A stretch of DNA of 64,000 nt, from assembly GCF_052425735.1 (NCBI RefSeq), contig NC_135763.1, forward strand, positions 38,316,001-38,380,000. Reading direction: 5' to 3'. The translations under genes and the position numbers were made by a program. The notes beneath the pieces are model-generated. The model was not told where the DNA came from, ran no database searches, and saw only the letters and a list, made by a program, of their open reading frames with translations. This document shows, piece after piece, positions 25,601-38,919 of this stretch; position 1 is the first letter of the stretch, and each line of letters opens with the position of its first letter. The DNA comes from Oculina patagonica (Eukaryota).

Positions 25601-28600
25601 TGGAACCGAATCCCGTCGCGTAAAATTGCCAATTCACGTATCCCGTTGTTAATTTCAATCCCGAATCTCGCTTCCTTTTCCATGTAAAACCCCGGATCTA
25701 GGCTTTCGAATAAGCCAAATCCGGATCCCGAAAAACCTATTGGGGACCCTGCAGTCGTCTCACCGAGCTCTGTTGCCATGAAGAAAGTGCTATTTATGGG
25801 ATAACCTACCAGACAACGCCCTTAATCTCACTGGGATGATGTGGTCAGTGAGAACCGGTCAGTCGGTCGATCCTAATTTCAGAGCTAGGAATTCCTTAAC
25901 AACTTTCCCTCTCATGAAACACACGAAGTTTCCATGTATGTGGTGGATCCACACCTTATGAACAACCTTATTGAACACTTATTGCACTAGGATATATCAG
26001 TTTCTAGCTGCGTTATTTGAAACGTAAAGTTCCACCTAGGGAGGGGGCAATCAGTCATGATCCATGATTACCCTTAGCGTGAATAATGAGAAAAGCTAAC
26101 GGGGAAAATGCACAAAATAAAAATACGTTTCTTCCGATATATGACTGAACATTCTCTAACGAAACGTACTATATAACCGAATTTGAATTATTTTATTTTA
26201 CCTCAACTTCTTTCAGGGTATTATTGTGAATAAAACATTTCACAATACTAACAGGCTTGTGGCATCCAGTATTCGTTTTCCACGCGTTGAACAGACTGGA
26301 CCGCAGACCCTCCGGGTGACGCTTAAAAACGCCACCAGCGTTACTTCACTGAAACGTATACCATCCAAGTCTAATTGCGAGGATATGCTGAAAACTCTTC
26401 GCCTCGGAAAATACGCCGCTGTATCCTGTAACCTTGGTACTTTCGATATCCCGTCGTTAGAAGCTATTCGAAATGTTCATGGCCTGTGGGAGGTAGCATA
26501 CAACGTTCAAAGGGAAAGGGTATGGCTGGCCAAAAAGGTGGTTCCTCCGAATGAAAAGTGTTCATATTCCAAAAGCGACATGGTCTCATTCGGAAATCTG
26601 ATATGGAATAATCCTGATGGTAATGCAGTTCTAGATTATGATCGTTCTCTGCTAGCTTCTGATTTGGCCCTGCTTTCTGGTACCCAGTGGCTCAATTTCT
26701 CTGTGCTGGCAACTACTGCAAAAATTTTGCAGTCAGAAGGCAGAGAGACAAGTGTTCTTATGTTGAATGAGCTTCTTCAAATGGATGGCGACAGTATTCG
26801 TCAAGTTATTCAAGAGCGCGGAAAGTACACGAAATACGTTGTATTCTTCGTAAACGTGGGCAAGGCAGCAGAGGTATTTTTTGGCAGCCCGAACAGACCA
26901 GGCAATCATTGGACACTTCTGTACATCGACCTAACAACAAATGAATGGTACTATTGTGATCCCTATGGTTGGGGTACGCCAAAGAATATGAAGGCAGCAC
27001 TCCTCCCCATAGTCGCCACGTTTCATGAAGAAATCAACTTAAAGCCCAGGCCCTTCAAAAGATGTATGCAAGGTTCCGTCCCGAGTGGAAGTCAAAACGT
27101 TGGTTCCTTAAAGAATCTTCCCATCCAAACATGTCCAAATGTCTGTGGTGTTATAGCTGCGATATTAGGAGGTATTGCCTCGGCAGCCCCAATTCTCTGG
27201 AGAGAAGTGTTCCTCAGCGATATGGCAGAGATGCCCGACGAGCTGAAATGGTTAATGTTCCCTTCCGTATATTCTGATTTCCTGAGGTGCTCACTTGCTT
27301 CGTGGCTCGTGAATGGAAAAGTTAATCTCGAAGCTTTAGGGATTCACAACACACCGAGTGGTCATACCGATCGTCCAGCTCAAGCCGAAGCAGCTAACGA
27401 AGAGCAGCAAGCCTCGCCTTCCAAAAGGAGGAAACTACGGTCAAAGTTAAAAAGAAGGCAACGAAAACACCAGACGCCGAGTTCCCAAGATAAGCGAGAT
27501 GCCACCCATGACAGACAAAAAGCTGATCCTGAAGTTATTCATGTAGACGATTGTGCGAGTCCCAAGTGTGTTGATGATAATCGTGAGAACCATCGCTATC
27601 GTAGTGATTTTGCGGCTCCAGCACGTAATGGAGATGATTCGGAGGATCTAACATGTCCCAACTATGTTGATGGCTTTAATGATAGGTCAGTGGCTGCTAA
27701 GTGTGACGGAAACAATTGCGAGGGTTCTCAGAATGTCGGCGATGGGTCAGCGGTTGATAAGGATGACAGAGATGATTGCGAGGGCTCACAGAACGCCAGC
27801 GATATGTCAGCGGTTGGTAAGGATGACGGAGATGGTTGCAAGGGCTCACAGAATGCCAGCGATATGTCAGCGGTTGATAAGGATGATGGAGGTGGTTGCA
27901 AGGGCTCACAGAATGCCAGCGATATGTCAGCGGTTGATAAGGATGATGGAGGTGGCTGCGAGGGTTCACAGGACGTCGGCAATGGGTCAGCGGTTGATAA
28001 GGATGACGGAGATGGGTCAGCGGTTGATAAGGATGATGGGGATGGGTCAGCGGTTGATAAGGATGATGGGGATGGGTCAGCGGTTGATAAGGATGATGGG
28101 AATGGGTCAGCGGTTGATAAGGATGACGGAGATGGGTCAGCGGTTGATAAGGATGATGGGGATGGGTCAGCGGTTGATAAGGATGATGGGGATGGGTCAG
28201 CGGTTGATAAGGATGATGGGAATGGGTCAGCGGTTGATAAGGATGACGGAGATGGGTCAGCGGTTGATAAGGATGATGGGAATGGGTCAGCGGTTGATAA
28301 GGATGATGGAGGCGATAAGCAGTGCGAGGCGGTCGGTGATGTAGGTGAAACTCACCGTCAGCAGAAAAATGGCTCGTTTTACCTGGGTCAGCGAATCTCA
28401 AGCACTGAGGAACTTGAAAGGCTGATAAAATCTTACGAAGTTGAAAACTTTTGTGAACTATGGAAAAAAGATGCCCGGTCATTAAAGGCAGCAGAGAAAC
28501 GAGTCCCAAAGAGGGTAGCATTGGCTGATCCGTCTTTACATTACTATTCTGTGTTGCTGTCATGCAAGTTCGGTGGAGAACCAAGGGAAAAAAAAGACAG

Positions 28601-31600
28601 GATTAAAAACACAAAAACGTTTCGTCAGGGGTGCCCCTTTGAAATATATATCTCTTTAAGCAATGATGGTCAAGCGCTCCAAGTGGGTCGTATTCAAGAA
28701 AGTCACAACCATGACTTAACGAAAGAACTGTACGAGCGTCTACCTCGGCAGAGAACAGTATCAGTTGAAGAAAAAAAAGAGATAGAAAAAGCCTTGAAAC
28801 TGAAGGTAAACTCCAAGTTGCTGCAGCAACAAATAGAACAATCCACTGGCAAGAAAGTCACCCTGAAAGATATCGCTAACATGAAGCAAAAGACAAGAAA
28901 AGATATCAACAAAAACGACCTTGACAGCGTTATTGCCTACCTTCAGCAACAGCATGGATCCATTGCGGAAATTATAATTGACGAGGAAAACAATTTCAAG
29001 GGCATCTTCTACCAAGACGAGTACATGAAAGATATGTACCGCAAATTTCCAGAACTTATTCTTGTCGACGCAACCTACAAGTTGTTGGAACTAAGGATGC
29101 CGGTGTACCTAGTTCTCTGCATTGATGGTAATGGATTAAGCGAGATTGTCGCTATGTTTATCCTTGCCGATGAAACAAAGGCGGTAATTGAAGCAGCCGT
29201 TGGCGTTTTTAAGAAATTGAATCCTGCTTGTAGTGAAACAAAAGTAGTAATGTCCGACAAAGATTTTACAGAACGGGAAGCCTTTACCAACTGCTTTCCA
29301 GGTGCTTCATTGAATATCTGCCTGTTCCACACACTGCGCTCATTTAGAAGAGAAATAACTTGCGAAAAAATGGGAATAACGTCAGCCGAAAGGCATCGAT
29401 GTCTGGAGGTTCTGACTAATCTGGCCTATTCCAAATCACCAGAAGAATACGACAGGCGTTTGCAGGCACTGGATAACATCAGTTCGAGTGTAAAGGAGTA
29501 CATTGAACTAAACTGGATTCCCATAAAGGATCAGTGGGTGTCGTGTTTTAAAGATAGCACTCTTAACCTTGGTGAAAGAACAAACAATCGTTTAGAGACA
29601 ACTTTCGGAAAGATTAAGAGTGTCTGCAGCAAATACGCGAGCCTGATGCAGTTCTTCCATGAATTTTTTTCTGTTTTGGCATCTTTGAGAAGTGAACGGA
29701 ACCACCACTACTTGATGGCCTTGACGAGGCGACCAATAGACTACGGGAAGATGGATCACACACTACGGCTTTATTCAGACCTTTTGACTCCTTATTCTTT
29801 TAACTTTGTTCGTGAGCAGTTCACCAAAGCGAGCACCGTATCAACGATGTCCCAGACGGCAAAAGGAACCTTTGAAGTGGCTTCAACAAAAGGGCATAAT
29901 CCTGTCACAACAACGGCAGAGACATGTACTTGCTCATTTGCAAAACGCATGGGTCTCCCATGCAGACATATCTTTAGGGCAAGAACAATACTTCAGCTGC
30001 CCTTATTTGAGAGCAGCCTCCCCAGAAAGAGATGGACCAAGGACTTTTATACCACGCTGAAAGACTCACGATTTCCACCAGAAAACGTTGTGGCAGACGA
30101 TGGTCAAAGTGCTTTCACGGAGGACTGCCCTACACCGCAAGTGGTTTTGTCAGCACTAAACAAAGACGGGAAAGTTCTTTCCCAGGCCCAAAAATTTCGA
30201 AAAGGTTTGCAGGCTGGACAGATTATCGCATCGCTCACGAGTGAAGGTGGCATGGTGAGTTTCAGGAACAGATACCAGCTACTGCAAGACCTAATAAGTT
30301 ACTGGAAACTTGGCACTGAAGTAGTACTAACTCCACTAAAAAAGTCCAAAGCTCTTGAACATGCGATTCCTGAAGTCGAGTCAGTAGGTAACAGTGAGAT
30401 TGCTGAAGAGGATCAAAACGAATTAACCGATCAAGTTGTGTTTGAAAATCTTGATAATGGATTAGACATTCCTGAACAAATTAAAACTGAAACAAACAAA
30501 GGAGCTCTGAATGTCAAGTCGGAAATAACACAGGATTCGATAAATTGGCCAGACACTTCTGAAGAAATGAATATGGAAATCTCTGAACAGTCAATTAAAG
30601 GAGAATTTTGTCCTAAAATATCGGAGACTGATGTTAAAAGTGGGCCGGAAAAGCAAGGAAACTCAAATTATAGCTTCATAAATATGCCACCCAAAATTAT
30701 GAAACGGGGTCGACCTAAAGGCGCTGAATTGACAGTAGTTGGCCTTCCAAAATCCAAAAGACGCAAAGGAGACTCCAAGAAATTATTGCCGTTCAGCAAA
30801 CTCCCCCCGGATGAGAAATCCAGAATCATATTAGAGTGTCTCACCAGCCAATTGGCTGCCGCAGAAACTTTAAGTGGCAAGAGGTTGTTGAATGACAAAG
30901 ATGTACAGACCAACATCCACATGATAAGAGATACCATTAGAGACACTAGTAACGTTGATGTTCATCGTGTTCAGAAGTATTTTAACAATGACGGTTGGTT
31001 GGCTGTGCTAGGCGTTCTAAAGGAAAAACAAGATAGGGAATTTTTTTGCGAAGTTTGTGAAAAGGTCATATCAGACGACGTGCAAGATAGTATAGCTTGT
31101 GATCGATGCTTGTTATGGTTCCATTTTTCTTGTACATCGCTGAAAAAAAAGCCCAAAGTCCGCAACTGGTTTTGCAAGGGCTGCAAAGTCAAGTATCAAT
31201 AAGGCAATTGTCATAGAAATCACTTTTGTTCGCTGGAACCCGTGTAACAAACACATTACCATCTCTTTTACACTCTGTTCAAGTATCGTGGTGTTTCCAA
31301 AGATTTAAGACTGATTTCAAGGAATGTTTGTTCATTTAGAGAGTGACCGTCCTTACTGTATAGGTTTTGCACATAAAATGAACATAAGAACACTATTGCT
31401 TTTTCTTGAATCAGTCAAATGGACGAAAAAGAAACAGTTTTCTTTATGACGACTGCCTAACCTAGGAATACTAAGGTATAGGCTAAGGTATGTTTTTGTT
31501 ACTTAGTGAGTTCGTTAATCTCAAAACGTTTAAGGTGAACATTGTTATTATGTTTGATTGTTATTGTTATGTTTAAGGCGAACTTTAACTCAGTATTAAC

Positions 31601-34469
31601 TTGGAAATGTACACTGGCTTGCTCTAATAAAGTTTTAATATTTAACCCAGTTTTACCCAAGTTAGTAATCCATGATATACCGTAGAATTCCGAGAGAAAC
31701 GGTGCCCCGGAAAATTCACGGTTCCGCGAACGTAACGTGTATTTTACCTACCTATAGAACCCCGAAAGTACCGGCGCTTTGAAAAAGTCCTAAAAAGGGA
31801 TACCCTTATTAGTTACTAGGTCCAGTAGGACCCAGACCTAGATCAACAGAACCTCAACGCTATTAGGCACACGTTGCGAACTGATCTGAGAGTGGTCTCC
31901 TCACTGAGGGGACAAATCCCCTGAATTTGAAAAAATCTACTTGAGTGACTATATATAGAGGAACGCTTTGTATTTCTATTTAACCGAGAGCTTCGTCGCT
32001 TCCAACGCTATGTTACTTGCGAAGGGTTTCTTACCTTATTGATAAAACGTTTAACTTACCTTACAAATAACTAAGAAAACCGAGAGCTTCGTCGCTTCCA
32101 ACGCTAAGCCGTTTAGCCCACAGAAGAACTTCGTCGCTTCCAACGCTGAGTTCGTTTTGGCGCGAAAACCAACACCACGTGCCACCTTTGTCACGCCACT
32201 AAAGTGTCACACCGGAAGTTACATCGGTGGCGGACTTTCGTCACCGAACGCTCAAGCGTTTTGTAGCTATTTTGTACTACTTTGCCGAGGCAATTGTTGA
32301 GGCCTTAAGTTGGAAAATCGCTTGGTATTTCTACACCGACATCTCAGCAGGTTCAAATGGAAATTTTGATGGAAAAACGGGAAGCATTTTTGACTGCCGG
32401 GTATGTAGTCTTTGAAAAATCGTGCCCGTGAGTCACATAAAGTTCGTACAATTTGTGCAAAACCAAACTGACATTGTAAAAACTCGCTTGGTATTTCCGA
32501 CCGAAAATTGAAATACTGAAATACTCTCGGGAGCTAGGTTTCAATGATCATTTTTGTGGATATTGAATGTATTGATTATTCATGAATTTTTGACTGCCGG
32601 GTATCTAGTCTTTTGAACAACCGTGCCCGTGAGTCGAGGATTTTATAGTACGCCGAAGCCAAGAGAATTCGTCCACAACAAAAGCAAAACATTATTTAGA
32701 ATCGCTTCGCATTTCTCAGCAAATATCGAATACTCTCGCAGGGTTTCAACTTCAGTTTTTGTAGAAATTATTCTATAAGAGTTGACACCGGAGTCAGAGT
32801 ACGAATTTTTTCTAAGTGTCGAAGAATCAAGATTTTGTAGTATGCCCAAGCTCGAAAATTTCCTCAAACACAAAGCCAAAACTATAATTGAAATCGCTTG
32901 GCATTTCTAAGCAAAGATCTATAGTTTTGAGGAGGATTGGATTGGTTTTTCCGTGGAAATTCTAGAATAATTTCAGACTGCCGGGTATGTAGTATTTTGA
33001 AAACACTTCCCGGCTGCCGGGTATCTAGACACTATGTATTTTAAAACCAGTAACCATTTGTTATTAATTATTTAAGAGCAATATTTTTTTCCTTAGCAAC
33101 CATCTACATTTAAATTATTTTATTAAAAGAGCAACTTTGTTTGATCAGGTCTGTTTTATTAATTCAGACTGCTGAAAAATTTGTTTTTGAGAAATATGAC
33201 TTATTTTATTTCAATTTAAAGTTTATTTATTTATTGATATCTTTCCGAACAAATCCTTCATGTATTTACAACATGCAGGTGTTTAATTCTTTCAAACAAT
33301 ATTTGTCCGCATAATAAATTAAACCGATCCGGTTTCACTGTTTTGGAAGTTTACGTGATATAGCAGCTTTTTTATTTCTACACAAAAATCTTGCCCGGAC
33401 ATTATACTCCAAACTTTGTCCGGAAATTTAATAAACGCGTCATAAGGACTGAGCTTGTAGTGATTGAATAGTGTTAGTTGAAGCGGATAATCCTATCTAA
33501 GCCGGAAAATCGTACACAAAGCATATTATGTTCATATAGCGATTCTCGAAATTTTGTAGGAATGTTTCTTTGCACGATTATCCACTCACTTACCTTGGTT
33601 CCTTCCAAAGTGCGCAGTTCTTTAACTGAGTACTTCAACATGTCAGAAATGTCCTTTAAAACGTCTTCGAAGCTTTTTACCGTCTTTCTGTTTAACAAGA
33701 TTTTACATTTCTTGTTTTTATCGTACTCACTGAGGATTGTTATAACCCGCGGTTTCGGATTTCCGTCAGAATTGCTCCCGCCAAACTTCGAATCTCTACT
33801 TGACGAAGACAACGAAGAGCCATCAGACAAAGTTTCGACATCAAGCGAGCGAGGCTTGTCTTTCTGCTTTTGACCGTAGTTCACATTTTTTATAAGCTGG
33901 TCTCCTGAAGAACAGATATAATGCCTTCCATCCTCTAACTGGTTAATAGTTGTAATTGAACTTCCACCAGGCGAAAAAACATTTCTCACTCCGTACGGAA
34001 GTGGAATCGCTTTTGATAGGTCTTCAACAATGGTGTCGAAAGATCGATATCGTTGTCTAGTCACAACCATCTCAACACCTTTGAAATGTTTATCCCCATT
34101 ACGGTAAAACGTAACTCTTTTCACAGCATTTACTCTGCTTTTTCGCTGATCTTTTCCTGCTGGATCAGAGCTAGAATTATTAGGAAATTCTGGAGGATTT
34201 CGTGGCCGCCGAGGGTCGCCAACAGGAGGGTTTCCAATGGCTTCGTTATTCCTTGCTGGTAAAGGAATGCGACTATTAAGTTTACCATCTCTCTTCTGAG
34301 GTCTTCTTTCTCTTACATCTCTATCAATTTCAGGAAGTCTAACGTGATCGTTGTCCTCCAAATCGCTGTTACTGTCGGCAGGAAAAGGCCGTCCGCGATG
34401 ACTAGCGCCATTCGGCAATGCCCGACGCTGTTGTTGAAAATTACTGTAACCGCGTCCGCGATAAGACAT
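13690..34469 (-). CDS. Doublecortin-domain echinoderm microtubule-associated protein-like (DCX-EMAP/EML family), ~20 exons
   Basis: Exon 33594-34469 encodes DCX domains (VTFYRNGDKHFKG...RYRSFD; ILLNRKTVKSFE). Exons 22674-22854, 22409-22541 and 21829-21978 give the HELP motif (KLQLSWV|YGYHGKD...HYTGHADDI). WD40 exons run from ~21227 to ~14992; the last exon ~13690-14395 (LITTGSRDVCILQW) has a low-complexity tail. Internal exon borders are approximate. Confidence 0.9.
18245..18986. mobile_element. Foldback/MITE-like element with ~125-bp diverged inverted repeats, within a larger repeat-like intronic block (~17850-19860)
   Basis: TTACTTTTGCCG...TTCGATACAAAGTTCCCAACTTCGGCCCGA (~18245-18370) is the inverted counterpart of ~18858-18986. 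Confidence 0.65.
21522..21744. mobile_element. MITE with TAGACTG termini and 9-bp TSD (AcademH-like)
   Basis: GTTTGGCAC|TAGACTGT...ACAGTCTA|GTTTGGCAC. Confidence 0.85.
21979..22408 (-). other. U12-type (minor spliceosome) GT-AG intron in the HELP motif of DCX-EMAP
   Basis: 5'ss GTATCTTT; branch site TCCTTGAC ~12 nt before the AG; no polypyrimidine tract; phase 2 in W-V|Y-G-Y. Confidence 0.85.
22095..22350. repeat. Degenerate ~20-bp tandem repeat (CCACCTTAGAGAG core) inside the U12 intron
   Basis: About a dozen imperfect CCACCTTAGAGAG-like units. Confidence 0.7.
23407..24434 (+). repeat. Left TIR of the MULE
   Basis: Mirror of 32009-33036; internal repeats TA(G/C)ATACCCGGCAG (x4) and AGCGTTGGAAGCGACGAAG (x2). 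Confidence 0.95.
26217..31202 (+). CDS. MULE transposase fusion: Ulp1/C48-like protease - acidic repeat - WRKY/GCM1-type Zn finger - DDE - SWIM - AT-hook - PHD
   Basis: Protease motifs QWLN, NHWTLLYID, YYCDP, PIQ..NVCG; DNA-binding domain C..G...GCPF...HNH; DDE core LVDATY / MSDKD / CLFH / TNNRLE; SWIM CTC...LPCRH; KRGRPK; PHD CEVC..CDRC..WFHFSC..WFCKGC. In-frame acceptor ttctttcag| at 26216. Confidence 0.93.
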   Translation, partial: GIIVNKTFHNTNRLVASSIRFPRVEQTGPQTLRVTLKNATSVTSLKRIPSKSNCEDMLKTLRLGKYAAVSCNLGTFDIPSLEAIRNVHGLWEVAYNVQRERVWLAKKVVPPNEKCSYSKSDMVSFGNLIWNNPDGNAVLDYDRSLLASDLALLSGTQWLNFSVLATTAKILQSEGRETSVLMLNELLQMDGDSIRQVIQERGKYTKYVVFFVNVGKAAEVFFGSPNRPGNHWTLLYIDLTTNEWYYCDPYGWGTPKNMKAALLPIVATFHEEINLKPRPFKRCMQGSVPSGSQNVGSLKNLPIQTCPNVCGVIAAILGGIASAAPILWREVFLSDMAEMPDELKWLMFPSVYSDFLRCSLASWLVNGKVNLEALGIHNTPSGHTDRPAQAEAANEEQQASPSKRRKLRSKLKRRQRKHQTPSSQDKRDATHDRQKADPEVIHVDDCASPKCVDDNRENHRYRSDFAAPARNGDDSEDLTCPNYVDGFNDRSVAAKCDGNNCEGSQNVGDGSAVDKDDRDDCEGSQNASDMSAVGKDDGDGCKGSQNASDMSAVDKDDGGGCKGSQNASDMSAVDKDDGGGCEGSQDVGNGSAVDKDDGDGSAVDKDDGDGSAVDKDDGDGSAVDKDDGNGSAVDKDDGDGSAVDKDDGDGSAVDKDDGDGSAVDKDDGNGSAVDKDDGDGSAVDKDDGNGSAVDKDDGGDKQCEAVGDVGETHRQQKNGSFYLGQRISSTEELERLIKSYEVENFCELWKKDARSLKAAEKRVPKRVALADPSLHYYSVLLSCKFGGEPREKKDRIKNTKTFRQGCPFEIYISLSNDGQALQVGRIQESHNHDLTKELYERLPRQRTVSVEEKKEIEKALKLKVNSKLLQQQIEQSTGKKVTLKDIANMKQKTRKDINKNDLDSVIAYLQQQHGSIAEIIIDEENNFKGIFYQDEYMKDMYRKFPELILVDATYKLLELRMPVYLVLCIDGNGLSEIVAMFILADETKAVIEAAVGVFKKLNPACSETKVVMSDKDFTEREAFTNCFPGASLNICLFHTLRSFRREITCEKMGITSAERHRCLEVLTNLAYSKSPEEYDRRLQALDNISSSVKEYIELNWIPIKDQWVSCFKDSTLNLGERTNNRLETTFGKIKSVCSKYASLMQFFHEFFSVLASLRSERNHHYLMALTRRPIDYGKMDHTLRLYSDLLTPYSFNFVREQFTKASTVSTMSQTAKGTFEVASTKGHNPVTTTAETCTCSFAKRMGLPCRHIFRARTILQLPLFESSLPRKRWTKDFYTTLKDSRFPPENVVADDGQSAFTEDCPTPQVVLSALNKDGKVLSQAQKFRKGLQAGQIIASLTSEGGMVSFRNRYQLLQDLISYWKLGTEVVLTPLKKSKALEHAIPEVESVGNSEIAEEDQNELTDQVVFENLDNGLDIPEQIKTETNKGALNVKSEITQDSINWPDTSEEMNMEISEQSIKGEFCPKISETDVKSGPEKQGNSNYSFINMPPKIMKRGRPKGAELTVVGLPKSKRRKGDSKKLLPFSKLPPDEKSRIILECLTSQLAAAETLSGKRLLNDKDVQTNIHMIRDTIRDTSNVDVHRVQKYFNNDGWLAVLGVLKEKQDREFFCEVCEKVISDDVQDSIACDRCLLWFHFSCTSLKKKPKVRNWFCKGCKVKYQ
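27715..28312 (+). repeat. Coding tandem repeat: 60-bp units then 30-bp units encoding (SAVDKDDG[D/N]G)n
   Basis: GATGGGTCAGCGGTTGATAAGGATGATGGG repeated ~11 times, preceded by 60-bp variants. Confidence 0.95.
32009..33036 (-). repeat. Right TIR of the MULE
   Basis: Reverse complement of 23407-24434 (coordinate sums are constant at 56443). Confidence 0.95.
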
Positions 34470-35004
34470 CTTAAGTCCTCGAATCTGCCATGTCTAAATA
34501 TTTTTGAAGCAGATAACGAAGATCCATCTTAGTGTCGAGGAATGAATGCCAGAAATTTGCTAGAAGGGTCGCGTGAATCCATTCAAAACAAGCGATCCAG
34601 TTAATGAGCTGACACGAGGGAAATTAAGCTTAACTAAATTTAATGCAACGATGGTCTTTTCCCGTCTAGTTTTCAATAGTATTCAGCCCATTCAACTTCA
34701 CCACTTTCATTACCGTCGCTACGAAGCCGTTTTATCTCTTATAATCTCAGTCTTGTGTATACTGGAGTGACAGCAAAGACAACTTGTGTACTTTCTTGCA
34801 GCAGTTGCATTGTCACGCAGATATTGGTGAACAGTTCTAAGGACCCCTTTGTTTACTTGCCTACGGAATTGACTGTTAATCTCTGAAAGTGTCCCTTCCA
34901 TTGTTAAGTTAATCAACAGTGTTGTCAAGCATTCGTAACTAGGCAGGTGTTCGTGAATGAATGGGAAGACTTGATTCAAATGCAAATGTTCTGTGAAAGG
35001 AAGC

Positions 35005-35085
35005 ATGACTGCCGCCATCTTGACTCTGTGTTGCACGAGAGAGAGAGGGGCCTGGGAATTGAACTCGTGACCAGATGGCGGGAAA
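35005..35085. promoter_or_regulatory. Candidate bidirectional promoter (DCX-EMAP / MysC-like)
   Basis: Divergent YY1-like AGATGGCG motifs (minus ~35011-35022, plus ~35073-35081) around a GA repeat. Plus-strand donor AAG|GTAGGT at 35312 and acceptor ttttcctgccag| at 37021. Confidence 0.4.
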
Positions 35086-35695
35086 CCTTGCGGGACGTCG
35101 ATGCAGGATATCTGGGGATGTCTGGCGGGTTCTTGTATTGGGTTACATCCATTGCACAACAAAGTGGGAAAGTACTTCATGTCAAGCCAAAGAACCGGTG
35201 TGGACATTGACTGTGCACATTGCGATTTGCGAGATAAGGTTGTCACAGGAGTAGAATCGACTTATACACTTGTCAGTAGACTTGTGTAAAGATCTAACAG
35301 TGCTGTCCAAAGGTAGGTAATTATAATTCAAGTGTAATCTCGTACCCAGATGTATACTTACTGGGTACGAGATTAAATTTAAGTGCTTCTTTCGGACAAC
35401 TTTTGACACGGACTATATCACTAAACTCACTTACTATCTTATATTCAAGTTGTGATGTTCCCTGATGGGATCTGCTACCTAAGCTTTAACGTTTATTGAA
35501 AACCTAGCTTTTTATTGAGCTTATTGTTTATTTATCTCTCTTGATAATGAGAAGTGTGGTGTGATTACAACTTTGGGTATTATTAAAAGCTGATCCTGTA
35601 TGCATATCAGACTTGTATCACGGCAGGAGCTATTGGGTCTGGTCTGGAATATGAATGAAAAATCACATCGCACCAGTGGCAAATCTAAGAGGGGC

Positions 35696-36580
35696 TAGCC
35701 TGAATTTCAGACATCCCTCTGTGCTCGCCTGCTTGCCAGAAGGGACGTCTGAACACATTTGGGCCTAATGCCGTCCGGTGACGTCACTACCCGAAACCCG
35801 GCTAGTGATTTTGATTGGTTGATTTAAAAATTATTTGCATAATTATGTGAAATTATGACTGAATTTTACCGCGCGAGGATTGTAATTTGAAAACGTTTGG
35901 AAAGAGTTCGAAAGAGTTCACCTTCCCAGAAATGAATTTATTAGTCATTTACCTTGAGTTTATTACTTTATTAGTTTACCTACGGATGAAGAATAGTAAT
36001 GGAAATCGGTAGGTTTTAAGTTGGCGGCATTCGTCGCTTCGACATGCAGTGTTTTGCCAAATTTATATGTATTCTTGTTTTGTCAACAAAGCCGCTCGAC
36101 GCTTATGTCCTGCAGCCTCGATGAGCCAGTGATTTCTGAACTCAGTGCCCACAGTCAAGTAGGATATTTTTGTATTGAATTCCGTTTCTTGATGCCTCTG
36201 TAACCGTCTAAATTGATTCATTTAAGTACTCACGAGTGTGTTGTATTTGTCCGCTGCGTAACATATTATATTTTGATCGCTAGATAAAGCAAATCAGTTC
36301 AGATTGAATCGGTTCCGTAAAAGAAAATAGCCTGCAGTCGATTAAAATCTCATTCATTTGTCTCAAGTTTTCAATAGTTTACTATTAAAACAATTTTATA
36401 CCCTGTAATCCTTTATTGAAGAGATTTTTCTTTCACAATTTCATGGCCTCGACAGAAAATTTTCCGCATGAATTAAAACCAAAGTGTAGTGACGTCACCG
36501 GACGGCATTAGGCCCAAATGTGTTCAGACGTCCCTTCTGGCAAGCAGGCAAGCACAGAGGGATGTCTGAAATTCAGGCTA
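35696..36580. mobile_element. Non-autonomous element with ~95-bp TIRs (TAGCCTG...CAGGCTA) and 9-bp TSD (AcademH-like)
   Basis: AAGAGGGGC|TAGCCTGAATTTCAGAC ... GTCTGAAATTCAGGCTA|AAGAGGGGC; inserted at the end of a further MITE (~36582-36800). Confidence 0.9.
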
Positions 36581-37042
36581 AAGAGGGGCCTGAAGGGGTA
36601 AAATGAGAACTGGGATTTGGGCAAATTTTCACTGGGAAAATGGGATTTGGATAACTGGGACTGGGAATCACAAACAAATAAGCAATAGAACTGGGACTGG
36701 GATTTAGAAAATTGGGAAAACAATAGGCTGGGAAATGGGGCTTGGGCAAAATTTGGGCTGGGAAATGAGATTTTATACCCTCTCCCCCTTCAGGACACCC
36801 ATTTAAGGAATGAATATGGAACTGAGACCTTGCTTTTTTGCTGAATGGGATAGCACTCAAGATTGCCTCCCACCTTATTGAAACAAGAATGGGAACACCT
36901 TCTTTCCGGGTTAAAGAAAGGGGCCATCTTCAGGGTTAGGGTTGGGGTTGGAAAGAAGAAAGGTCAAATTATCAGCTAACTAAATACAACTTTCTGTTTG
37001 CATTATTATTTTTCCTGCCAGACTGATTTGTAGTCATTCCAA

Positions 37043-38449
37043 ATGGTCGATATAACAGAAAAATCAAGGTCCTTCCCATTGACGTCAAAGTTTCCTGGTC
37101 AGCTTTGGTACAGGGCCAAGGCTGCTGTCTATCTGTGCATGTTACTTGCAGCAACACCATTCTGTCTTTTATTAACCATTTGTTATTGGTTGTTTGGAAG
37201 AAGGACCAAAGATGGTGAACATATTGAAGAATCCCTCAGGCGTACTGTGTTGGTATCAGGTGTAGTTCACACCAAGGGCCTACACGTTGCCAAAACCTTG
37301 GCAAAAGCTGGTCATCGAGTAATATTGGCTGATACTAAAGAGTTCTGGTGTGCTGCGGCTCAGTGGTCATGCTTCATTTCCAAATTCTACACTGTACCAA
37401 ATTTAAATTCCCAGGATGGCAATGAGGAATATATCAATGGCATGATCAACATTGCTAAAATGGAGAAGATTGATTGGTATATTCCAGTAAGCCATACCAA
37501 GACAGCTGTGTCTGATACAATCATCAAACAGCGTCTTGCCGAGGTGAATCCACAAATCAAGTGTCTTGTTTTTGATGATCCAAAGCTCACAGCTATTCTT
37601 GATGATAAACTGCTTTTCCTAGAGGAATGCCAAAGACTAAACCTTCTGGTACCATACTTTAAACAAGTTAACAGCTCAAAAGAGGTCTCTGAATTGGCTA
37701 AGAAGGGACTTTTTTCAAAAGGTCACTACTTTCTTAAACCTTTGATGCCATATTCTGTGGACCGAGAAAACTTCACCCACATACCAAGCAATCCAATGGA
37801 ATTTGAGAAGTACATTGCCTGCTATGAATCAAAGCTTAACAGTAACAATCCATACCTTGTCCACCAGTTTATAAAAGGGAAAGAATTTGCAGCCAATTCC
37901 ATTGTTGTGGAGGGACATCTCCAAGCTTTCCATGTCTGCCCTTGTTCACCAGTGCAGATTGACTATGATGTCGTCAAACATCCAGAGATCAAAAAATGGG
38001 TGGAAACATTTTGCAAAGCCAAGCAGCTCACTGGATGTGTTTGCTTTGATTTCCTTGAGGATGAGACAACTGGAGACATTTACTGCATAGAGTGCAATCC
38101 GCGCCTTCATTCGGGTGTGGTTTCCTACCACATGCAGCCCAATCTTGAAAGAGCCATTCGCGGTGCCATGGATTTTCAATTTCAGTTGTCGACAGCATTA
38201 GAGCCTCCTGTTACTTCTACTCATGTCTACTGGCTATACAATGAAATTGCCAAAGTTGGTCTTTTCCAGCAAGGTCTTGGAGAATTTGCTGCCACTTTAT
38301 GGACTGGCAAGGAAGCAGTTCTGGATCCAAGTGACCCACTGCCATTCTTTATGTTGAATCATTGGCAAATGCCTGTTTTGCTATTACAAGCACTCATTAG
38401 TGGAAAAAGATGGGATATTACAAATTACTGCCTTGGACAACTAAGGTAG
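37043..38449 (+). CDS. mysC: Mycosporine-like amino acid ATP-grasp ligase (MysC / Ava_3856-like), intronless CDS, 468 aa
   Basis: Colinear MysC motifs: N-terminal hydrophobic helix, TVLVSG..TK.L..A..L..AGHRVIL, KFYTVP, IDWYIPV, LDDK, QFIKGKEF, FDF, IECNPRLHS, YWLYNE, GKEAV..DPLPF.MLNHWQMP.LLL, W....Y..G.L. Confidence 0.85.
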   Translation: MVDITEKSRSFPLTSKFPGQLWYRAKAAVYLCMLLAATPFCLLLTICYWLFGRRTKDGEHIEESLRRTVLVSGVVHTKGLHVAKTLAKAGHRVILADTKEFWCAAAQWSCFISKFYTVPNLNSQDGNEEYINGMINIAKMEKIDWYIPVSHTKTAVSDTIIKQRLAEVNPQIKCLVFDDPKLTAILDDKLLFLEECQRLNLLVPYFKQVNSSKEVSELAKKGLFSKGHYFLKPLMPYSVDRENFTHIPSNPMEFEKYIACYESKLNSNNPYLVHQFIKGKEFAANSIVVEGHLQAFHVCPCSPVQIDYDVVKHPEIKKWVETFCKAKQLTGCVCFDFLEDETTGDIYCIECNPRLHSGVVSYHMQPNLERAIRGAMDFQFQLSTALEPPVTSTHVYWLYNEIAKVGLFQQGLGEFAATLWTGKEAVLDPSDPLPFFMLNHWQMPVLLLQALISGKRWDITNYCLGQLR

Positions 38450-38668
38450 TCTGATTCTCATTTGAGATTGTGCAAACTCCCGGGAGAGATGTCTGCATCA
38501 ATTAATTTTCAAGAACATATTCCTAGAACTCCCCTGCTAAGAAATAAGGCCACTATTGATAATGCTGAACAAAAATATCATAACATGGATTAATTTCATT
38601 TCTTAACATTTGTTGAAAATGTATCATGATGGTCATGATGGTGCTGATAGGTATCATAATTATCAATT

Positions 38669-38919
38669 CAGGGTTCGTACACTTTTTCAGGCCAAAAATT
38701 CAAGGACTTTTCAAGGACTTACCAGGACCGTTCTTGGAAATTTCAAGGACTTCTTTCATGAAATTTACCCCAAATCAACAGTTGATGTGCTTGCTGAAGA
38801 ACTAAAAAAATCGCTTATTTTGGCAGTCTTCTCATTGCCTTGAAGCCTTTTGACGGACTTTCAAGGCCTTGAATTTTTATTTTGAGATTCAAGGACTTTC
38901 AAGGCGTGTGTGAACCCTG
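38669..38919. mobile_element. MITE, CAGGGTTC termini, 6-bp TSD
   Basis: TCAATT|CAGGGTTCG...GAACCCTG|TCAATT; internal TTTCAAGGAC repeats. Confidence 0.75.

Follow-up and report, generated by a model that had tools for sequence, protein, structure and literature searches.

A MysC-type ATP-grasp ligase gene of the coral Oculina patagonica is probably a single-copy ortholog of the known anthozoan gene

Results

Gene structure and transcription

The window analyzed in this study is a 64,000-nucleotide stretch of DNA from the 529-Mb genome assembly of the coral Oculina patagonica (C6:38316001-38380000), located on a contig of at least 38 Mb. An open reading frame (ORF) of 468 aa is present on its plus strand (37043..38449), and the entire coding sequence (CDS) lies inside one exon. 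A TAG is found in frame at 37031-37033, 5' of the ATG, so that the CDS cannot reach into exon 1. These data confirm the first-pass annotation, made from the sequence of the window alone, in which the CDS had been described as intronless. The features of the gene are as follows:

35117..35312, plus strand: exon 1, non-coding (5'UTR), starting at or before 35117 (approximate boundary)
35313..37021, plus strand: 5'UTR intron, 1709 nt, GT..AG, with its joint present in three runs
35696..36580, no strand assigned: MITE-like non-autonomous DNA transposon, 885 bp, inside the 5'UTR intron
37022..38700, plus strand: exon 2, with the complete CDS between 21 nt of 5'UTR and a 3'UTR of at least about 250 nt
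37043..38449, plus strand: complete CDS of a predicted MysC-type ATP-grasp ligase, 468 aa (ORF, NF005315/PRK06849, AlphaFold2 (AF2) model, coral orthologs)
37091..37195, plus strand: hydrophobic helix near the N-terminus, residues 17-51, probably anchoring the protein in a membrane (AF2, Kyte-Doolittle)
37238..38425, plus strand: predicted ATP-grasp catalytic core, residues 66-461 (family match, conserved residues, structure matches)

The 1709-nt intron (35313-37021) is defined by a joint from 35310 to 37020, which is present in contigs of three runs (X1, X2 and X3) from three studies. The splice sites were read directly, with AAG/GTAGGT at the donor and a pyrimidine tract followed by CAG/A at the acceptor, so that the spliced 5'UTR proposed at these positions is supported by both a recurrent joint and canonical GT..AG boundaries. 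Exon 1 is represented by X2 record 8 (35117-35312) and X3 record 17 (35167-35310, then 37020-37159), and X1 record 1 runs unbroken from 34700 to 35310 and is then joined to 37020. Over exon 2, X1 record 4 spans 37318-38698 with 0 differences and X3 record 20 ends at 38701; the 3' end of this exon is approximate because the contigs stop at a repeat, and transcript ends are likewise approximate wherever contigs break at repeats. The runs were typed as RNA by guess, for which the canonical spliced joint is itself an argument, and the spliced contigs from three studies behave as transcript data, from the same species, for a MysC gene transcribed in the coral. Almost no reads on the MysC gene were found in the raw poly(A) run X23.

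Genomic setting and host origin

A gene with a doublecortin domain (DCX) lies upstream of the MysC gene on the minus strand, in a head-to-head arrangement suggesting that the two genes probably share a bidirectional promoter. The ORFs of the DCX gene are located at 33474-34469 and 34719-35246 (minus strand), and its transcribed regions overlap MysC exon 1 or lie within about 100 bp of it; one X1 contig passes through both the DCX gene and MysC exon 1 (34700-35312). Farther upstream, a 1658-aa ORF with MULE transposase, ZSWIM-type RNaseH-like and PHD domains is present at 26226-31202 (plus strand).

In a related coral, the ortholog P0001 (locus L018) is 88% identical to the window protein, with the same neighbours and the same exon-intron plan. 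Between the two loci, collinearity extends from the DCX gene through the donor and the adjoining end of exon 1, the acceptor and the CDS into downstream blocks. Both the DCX gene and the preservation of this layout in another coral support the earlier view that the gene is embedded among animal genes.

The 885-bp MITE-like element is bounded by terminal inverted repeats of 95 nt with 99% complementarity. Its family has at least 40 full-length copies with 94-99% identity across many large contigs of the genome (40 copies scored among 508 first-look candidates), in agreement with the suggestion that the intron contains host MITEs. RNA-contig depth spikes over the element, and the region of the element is without alignment to L018. 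The insertion in the MysC intron is young and is this copy's own.

The bacterial or algal origin of the family and the intronless CDS could point to a symbiont, either a dinoflagellate or a bacterium, as the source of the gene through contamination or chimeric assembly. However, the gene lies between animal genes on a contig of at least 38 Mb, contigs of three studies show a canonical splice between host sequence and the CDS, the intron holds a MITE that is spread host-wide, synteny is kept in another coral, the base composition is host-like (GC of 41.9% and GC3 of 40.5% in the CDS, matching the composition of the window), and the clade of the gene is separate from the bacteria. The probability of such an origin is practically nil, and contamination, against which the first-pass annotation had also argued, or chimeric assembly is effectively excluded. 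With its host-like composition, its spliced non-coding exon 1 and a host transposon in its intron, the MysC gene is a long-resident nuclear gene.

Family assignment and predicted structure

A Pfam search of the window protein returned weak ATP-grasp matches only. The best-matching family was NF005315 (PRK06849), with an E value of 1.9e-71 for the alignment of residues 66-461 to positions 4-377 of the 389-position model, and the next family had an E value of 5e-6. The score on NF005315, 241 bits, is below the curated equivalog cut-off of 406 of this prokaryote-built model. All eukaryote-type homologs scored also fall below 406, including those of Montipora capricornis (232) and Nematostella (168) and a sequence provisionally labelled "protist-like" (215), and the window protein scores higher than each of these. 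Judged from these sequences, the sub-cut-off score would be a measure of the distance between eukaryotes and bacteria rather than an exclusion of the window gene. By comparison, MysC of Nostoc linckia NIES-25 (locus L022), encoded in a mysABCD cluster that has been characterized by heterologous expression (PMC10666671), scores 565 bits on the same model. Among the bacterial loci encoding the closest relatives of the window protein, 73 out of 80 contain mysA and mysB within 6 kb, with a direct mysA-mysB-mysC arrangement in a Leptolyngbyaceae locus (L013).

The AF2 model of the window protein has a pLDDT of 91.7 and a pTM of 0.90. Its closest structural matches were all ATP-grasp enzymes: Foldseek matched it to biotin carboxylase, carbamoyl-phosphate synthetase (CPS), RizA and PylC with E values of 1e-10 to 1e-13, and D-aspartate ligase aligned to it with TM scores of 0.63/0.69. 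A sequence search of the PDB retrieved no solved MysC structure. In an alignment of 77 bacterial and eukaryote-type sequences, 29 columns are invariant, including K232, D336, E350, N352 and R354, which we take to be the nucleotide, Mg and catalytic set of ATP-grasp enzymes. With PRK06849 as its best family, an ATP-grasp fold in the model, these residues kept, and relatives encoded in mysA/mysB loci, the window protein is predicted to be a MysC-type ATP-grasp ligase with intact catalytic residues, as originally annotated.

In addition, AF2 predicts a long helix at residues 17-51 of the window protein, which has a Kyte-Doolittle maximum of 2.26 over 19 aa. A hydrophobic segment of transmembrane grade precedes the catalytic core in all 75 homologs, both bacterial and eukaryotic, that have an N-terminus of at least 25 aa (alignment A2), and Pro39 is invariant in a 16-sequence alignment (A1). 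The model and the alignments suggest that MysC may be tethered to the membrane via this N-terminal helix; nothing relevant to such an anchor was retrieved from the literature.

Orthology and sequence divergence

Only one PRK06849-type locus was found in the whole genome by protein and family-model searches. The first-pass annotation had taken the gene for a divergent paralog; being the sole copy in the genome, it is not a paralog.

Nor is it divergent among its orthologs. The coral orthologs of the window protein are 64-88% identical to it, and the dN/dS of the window gene against the L018 ortholog is 0.18, indicative of purifying selection. In a maximum-likelihood tree of 58 sequences, computed by quick search with SH-aLRT support only and with provisional "anemone-like" and "protist-like" clade labels, 21 bacterial sequences are split from 37 eukaryote-type sequences with 100% support, and the branch between the two groups is long (1.88 + 0.32). 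The window protein is placed inside a 15-row coral clade (support 99), beside P0001, with an end branch of 0.063. Moreover, when coral-conserved columns are defined by a conservation of 90% or more among 46 other coral-type homologs, the window protein departs from 6 out of 252 (L/S, R/K, K/E, A/S, T/S and L/M), and all six departures are mild and conservative. By its short branch, these few replacements, its low dN/dS and an NF005315 score above those of other eukaryote-type homologs, the window protein appears to be among the least divergent coral sequences. The gene is thus very probably the scleractinian ortholog, present in one copy, of the MysC-type ATP-grasp ligase of anthozoans.

Motif differences and amine specificity

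The motifs GVVHTKGL, AANS and NYCLGQLR-stop of the window protein differ from the cyanobacterial GGKMTKAL, CTHS and IDFNIGKLVE.GGD, and in this respect the earlier motif comparison was correct. The versions found in the window protein, or near variants of them, are present in all eukaryote-type homologs compared, including that of Nematostella. On this comparison, the differences are a mark of the deep split between eukaryotes and bacteria and not of the window gene, and the part of the claim that concerned divergence of this particular gene does not hold. Since the motifs are common to all eukaryote-type homologs, a new amine specificity of this particular gene finds no support in them.

Serine- or threonine-based MAAs occur in some corals. 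The first-pass annotation had proposed that changed motifs give a divergent paralog a new amine specificity, leading to cnidarian-specific mycosporines, and both the dissimilarity of the motifs from those of cyanobacterial MysC and the serine- or threonine-based MAAs of some corals are consistent with this idea. The existence of bacterial paralogs with other amine specificities, MysC2 and MysC3, is a further point in its favour (PMC10666671). However, no second copy was found in the genome, the motifs extend to every eukaryote-type homolog, those of Nematostella and the "protist-like" sequences among them, and the window protein stands among the least divergent in corals. A divergent paralog with altered specificity is therefore very unlikely, and a single-copy ortholog remains the preferred reading.

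Pathway partners in the genome

Neither mysA nor mysB was found in the 64-kb window by tblastn or with profile HMMs of bacterial MysA and MysB. MysD was searched for genome-wide, and the genome is without match to PF07478 or to Nostoc linckia MysD. These results agree with the annotated lack of mysA, mysB and mysD in the window.

A genome-wide search located the only DHQS-like (MysA-type) gene of the genome at C13:21409000-21412600 (about 21.41 Mb; loci L014, L002, L015 and L017), with two clear exons matching the MysA profile. The C-terminal exon of this gene is duplicated on the opposite strand about 29 kb away (C13:21381097-21381564, minus strand; locus L117, 5990-6625), and there is a 500-N assembly gap within the same 10 kb as the extra exon. 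The extra exon may stem from a partial duplication or from an error of assembly.

No MysB-type O-methyltransferase was detected near the DHQS-like gene in 80 kb (C13:21365000-21444999, a region containing two 500-N gaps), with a truncated cyanobacterial MysB, the full Nostoc linckia MysB and a 73-sequence MysB profile HMM as queries. A DHQS-O-MT fusion has been described in Acropora and Nematostella (PMC4083563). Exons of PF01596-type O-methyltransferases occur in this genome only on C2 and C6:

C6:13810000-13845000 (13.81-13.85 Mb): about four or five PF01596-type genes in tandem
C2:11811200-11814100 and C2:15060500-15063000: two PF01596-type loci

The best match to cyanobacterial MysE is an NRPS-like gene with adenylation and carrier regions at C5:5437600-5446100 (minus strand). 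Anabaena subtropica MysE matched it weakly and in generic adenylation and carrier regions only, which does not establish orthology.

With mysA and mysB searches negative in the window and the DHQS-like gene on C13, the MysC gene stands outside any mys cluster, as first reported from the window, and the MAA genes of this coral are dispersed rather than clustered. This dispersal agrees with the known distribution of eukaryotic MAA clusters, which have been reported solely for red algae and some Symbiodiniaceae (PMC6001144, PMC9298759). Clustering with mysA and mysB is typical of bacteria and is not a defining character in eukaryotes.

Discussion

Proposed function

The gene encodes an expressed and selectively constrained ATP-grasp ligase of the MysC family that is catalytically intact as judged by its residues. 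Anabaena MysC was characterized by Balskus and Walsh in 2010, as summarized in PMC10666671. By homology, the coral enzyme would transfer a phosphate from ATP to the C3 hydroxyl of 4-deoxygadusol, and this phosphate would then be displaced by the amine of an amino acid, most likely glycine. The product would in that case be mycosporine-glycine, the core of coral sunscreens; this assignment of substrate and product draws on about 33-35% identity to the bacterial enzymes. The precursor, 4-deoxygadusol, could be provided through the DHQS-like gene on C13. The literature searched contained no enzyme assay of an animal MysC and no biochemically characterized one.

The whole eukaryote-type clade might also have drifted to another substrate or to a role outside MAA synthesis while keeping its ATP-grasp chemistry. 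The long branch between bacterial and eukaryote-type sequences, the scores under the cut-off of the bacterial model, and a MysB or MysD partner not located with confidence in this genome are compatible with such drift. It is nevertheless unlikely, as the sequences align over their full length with the invariant columns including all catalytic residues, the gene appears to be under purifying selection, a DHQS-like gene co-occurs in the genome, and MAAs are abundant in corals, to which the literature assigns this gene set (PMC10901607). A related proposal, rather unlikely as a whole, is that the eukaryote-type MysC clade, which comprises corals, anemones and other marine eukaryotes, is functionally unlike bacterial MysC and additionally uses its N-terminal helix as a membrane tether. 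From the alignments, amine choice could be altered by the clade-wide replacements in the N-terminal G-x-x-x-T-K-x-L loop and in the strand that follows the conserved Glu, in combination with the shortened C-terminus of the clade. Were this the case, the altered amine choice could contribute to the MAAs typical of corals. The preferred reading is still that of an ortholog in the MysC family for which glycine is the most likely amine.

Comparison with known systems

Within the same ATP-grasp superfamily and MAA pathway, MysD (PF07478) belongs to another family, and the window protein has no PF07478 match. Cyanobacterial MysC, represented by Ava_3856 of Anabaena variabilis and by MysC of the mysABCD-mysH cluster of Nostoc linckia NIES-25 (L022), shares with the coral protein the ATP-grasp fold, full-length collinearity, the residues K232, D336, E350, N352 and R354, the N-terminal hydrophobic helix and, presumably, the reaction of 4-deoxygadusol, glycine and ATP to mycosporine-glycine. 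It differs in sequence, with an identity of 33-36% and with other versions of the coral GVVHTKGL, AANS and NYCLGQLR-stop motifs, and in genomic arrangement, the bacterial genes being in mysA-mysB-mysC operons whereas the DHQS-like gene of the coral lies on a different contig of chromosome scale.

MysC2 and MysC3 of drought-tolerant Nostoc, with ornithine/lysine specificity, belong to the same family as well and are evidence that its members can differ in amine specificity (PMC10666671). They are, however, extra copies beside MysC1 in one cluster, whereas the coral gene is a single copy and carries no sequence feature that sets it apart from other corals. MysC-type genes in clusters or fusions of other eukaryotes are nuclear like the coral gene, but the latter stands alone, and no D-Ala-D-Ala-ligase-type gene was found in the coral genome.

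The closest known system is that of other anthozoans. The ATP-grasp homolog of the shinorine pathway, a homolog of cyanobacterial MysC (Ava_3856), was first reported in Acropora digitifera and Nematostella vectensis by Shinzato et al. in 2011, according to the accounts in PMC4083563 and PMC10901607. The existence of unclustered coral MAA genes has likewise been published (PMC4083563, PMC10901607, PMC6001144). The window gene and the anthozoan homolog belong to the same family, have the same eukaryote-type motifs and are unclustered in both cases. Identity of the window protein is 64-73% to acroporid-type sequences (66% to Montipora capricornis) and 38% to Nematostella, in which the CDS is also intronless but the neighbouring genes differ from those of the Oculina patagonica gene. 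Apart from the species, the young MITE of its own in the 5'UTR intron distinguishes the window gene from these homologs. The window gene is therefore a known gene, correctly spotted, from a family known in anthozoans since 2011. Its occurrence in an animal genome, the lack of clustering and a likely horizontal origin have all been described before (PMC4083563, PMC10901607). What this study contributes is a verified gene model, consisting of a non-coding exon, an intron and a single coding exon, together with the use of the motif differences as a mark of the split between eukaryotes and bacteria. In the published view, corals are able to produce at least some of their own sunscreen instead of depending on symbionts, and the presence and transcription of a MysC-type gene in the genome of this coral are in line with it.
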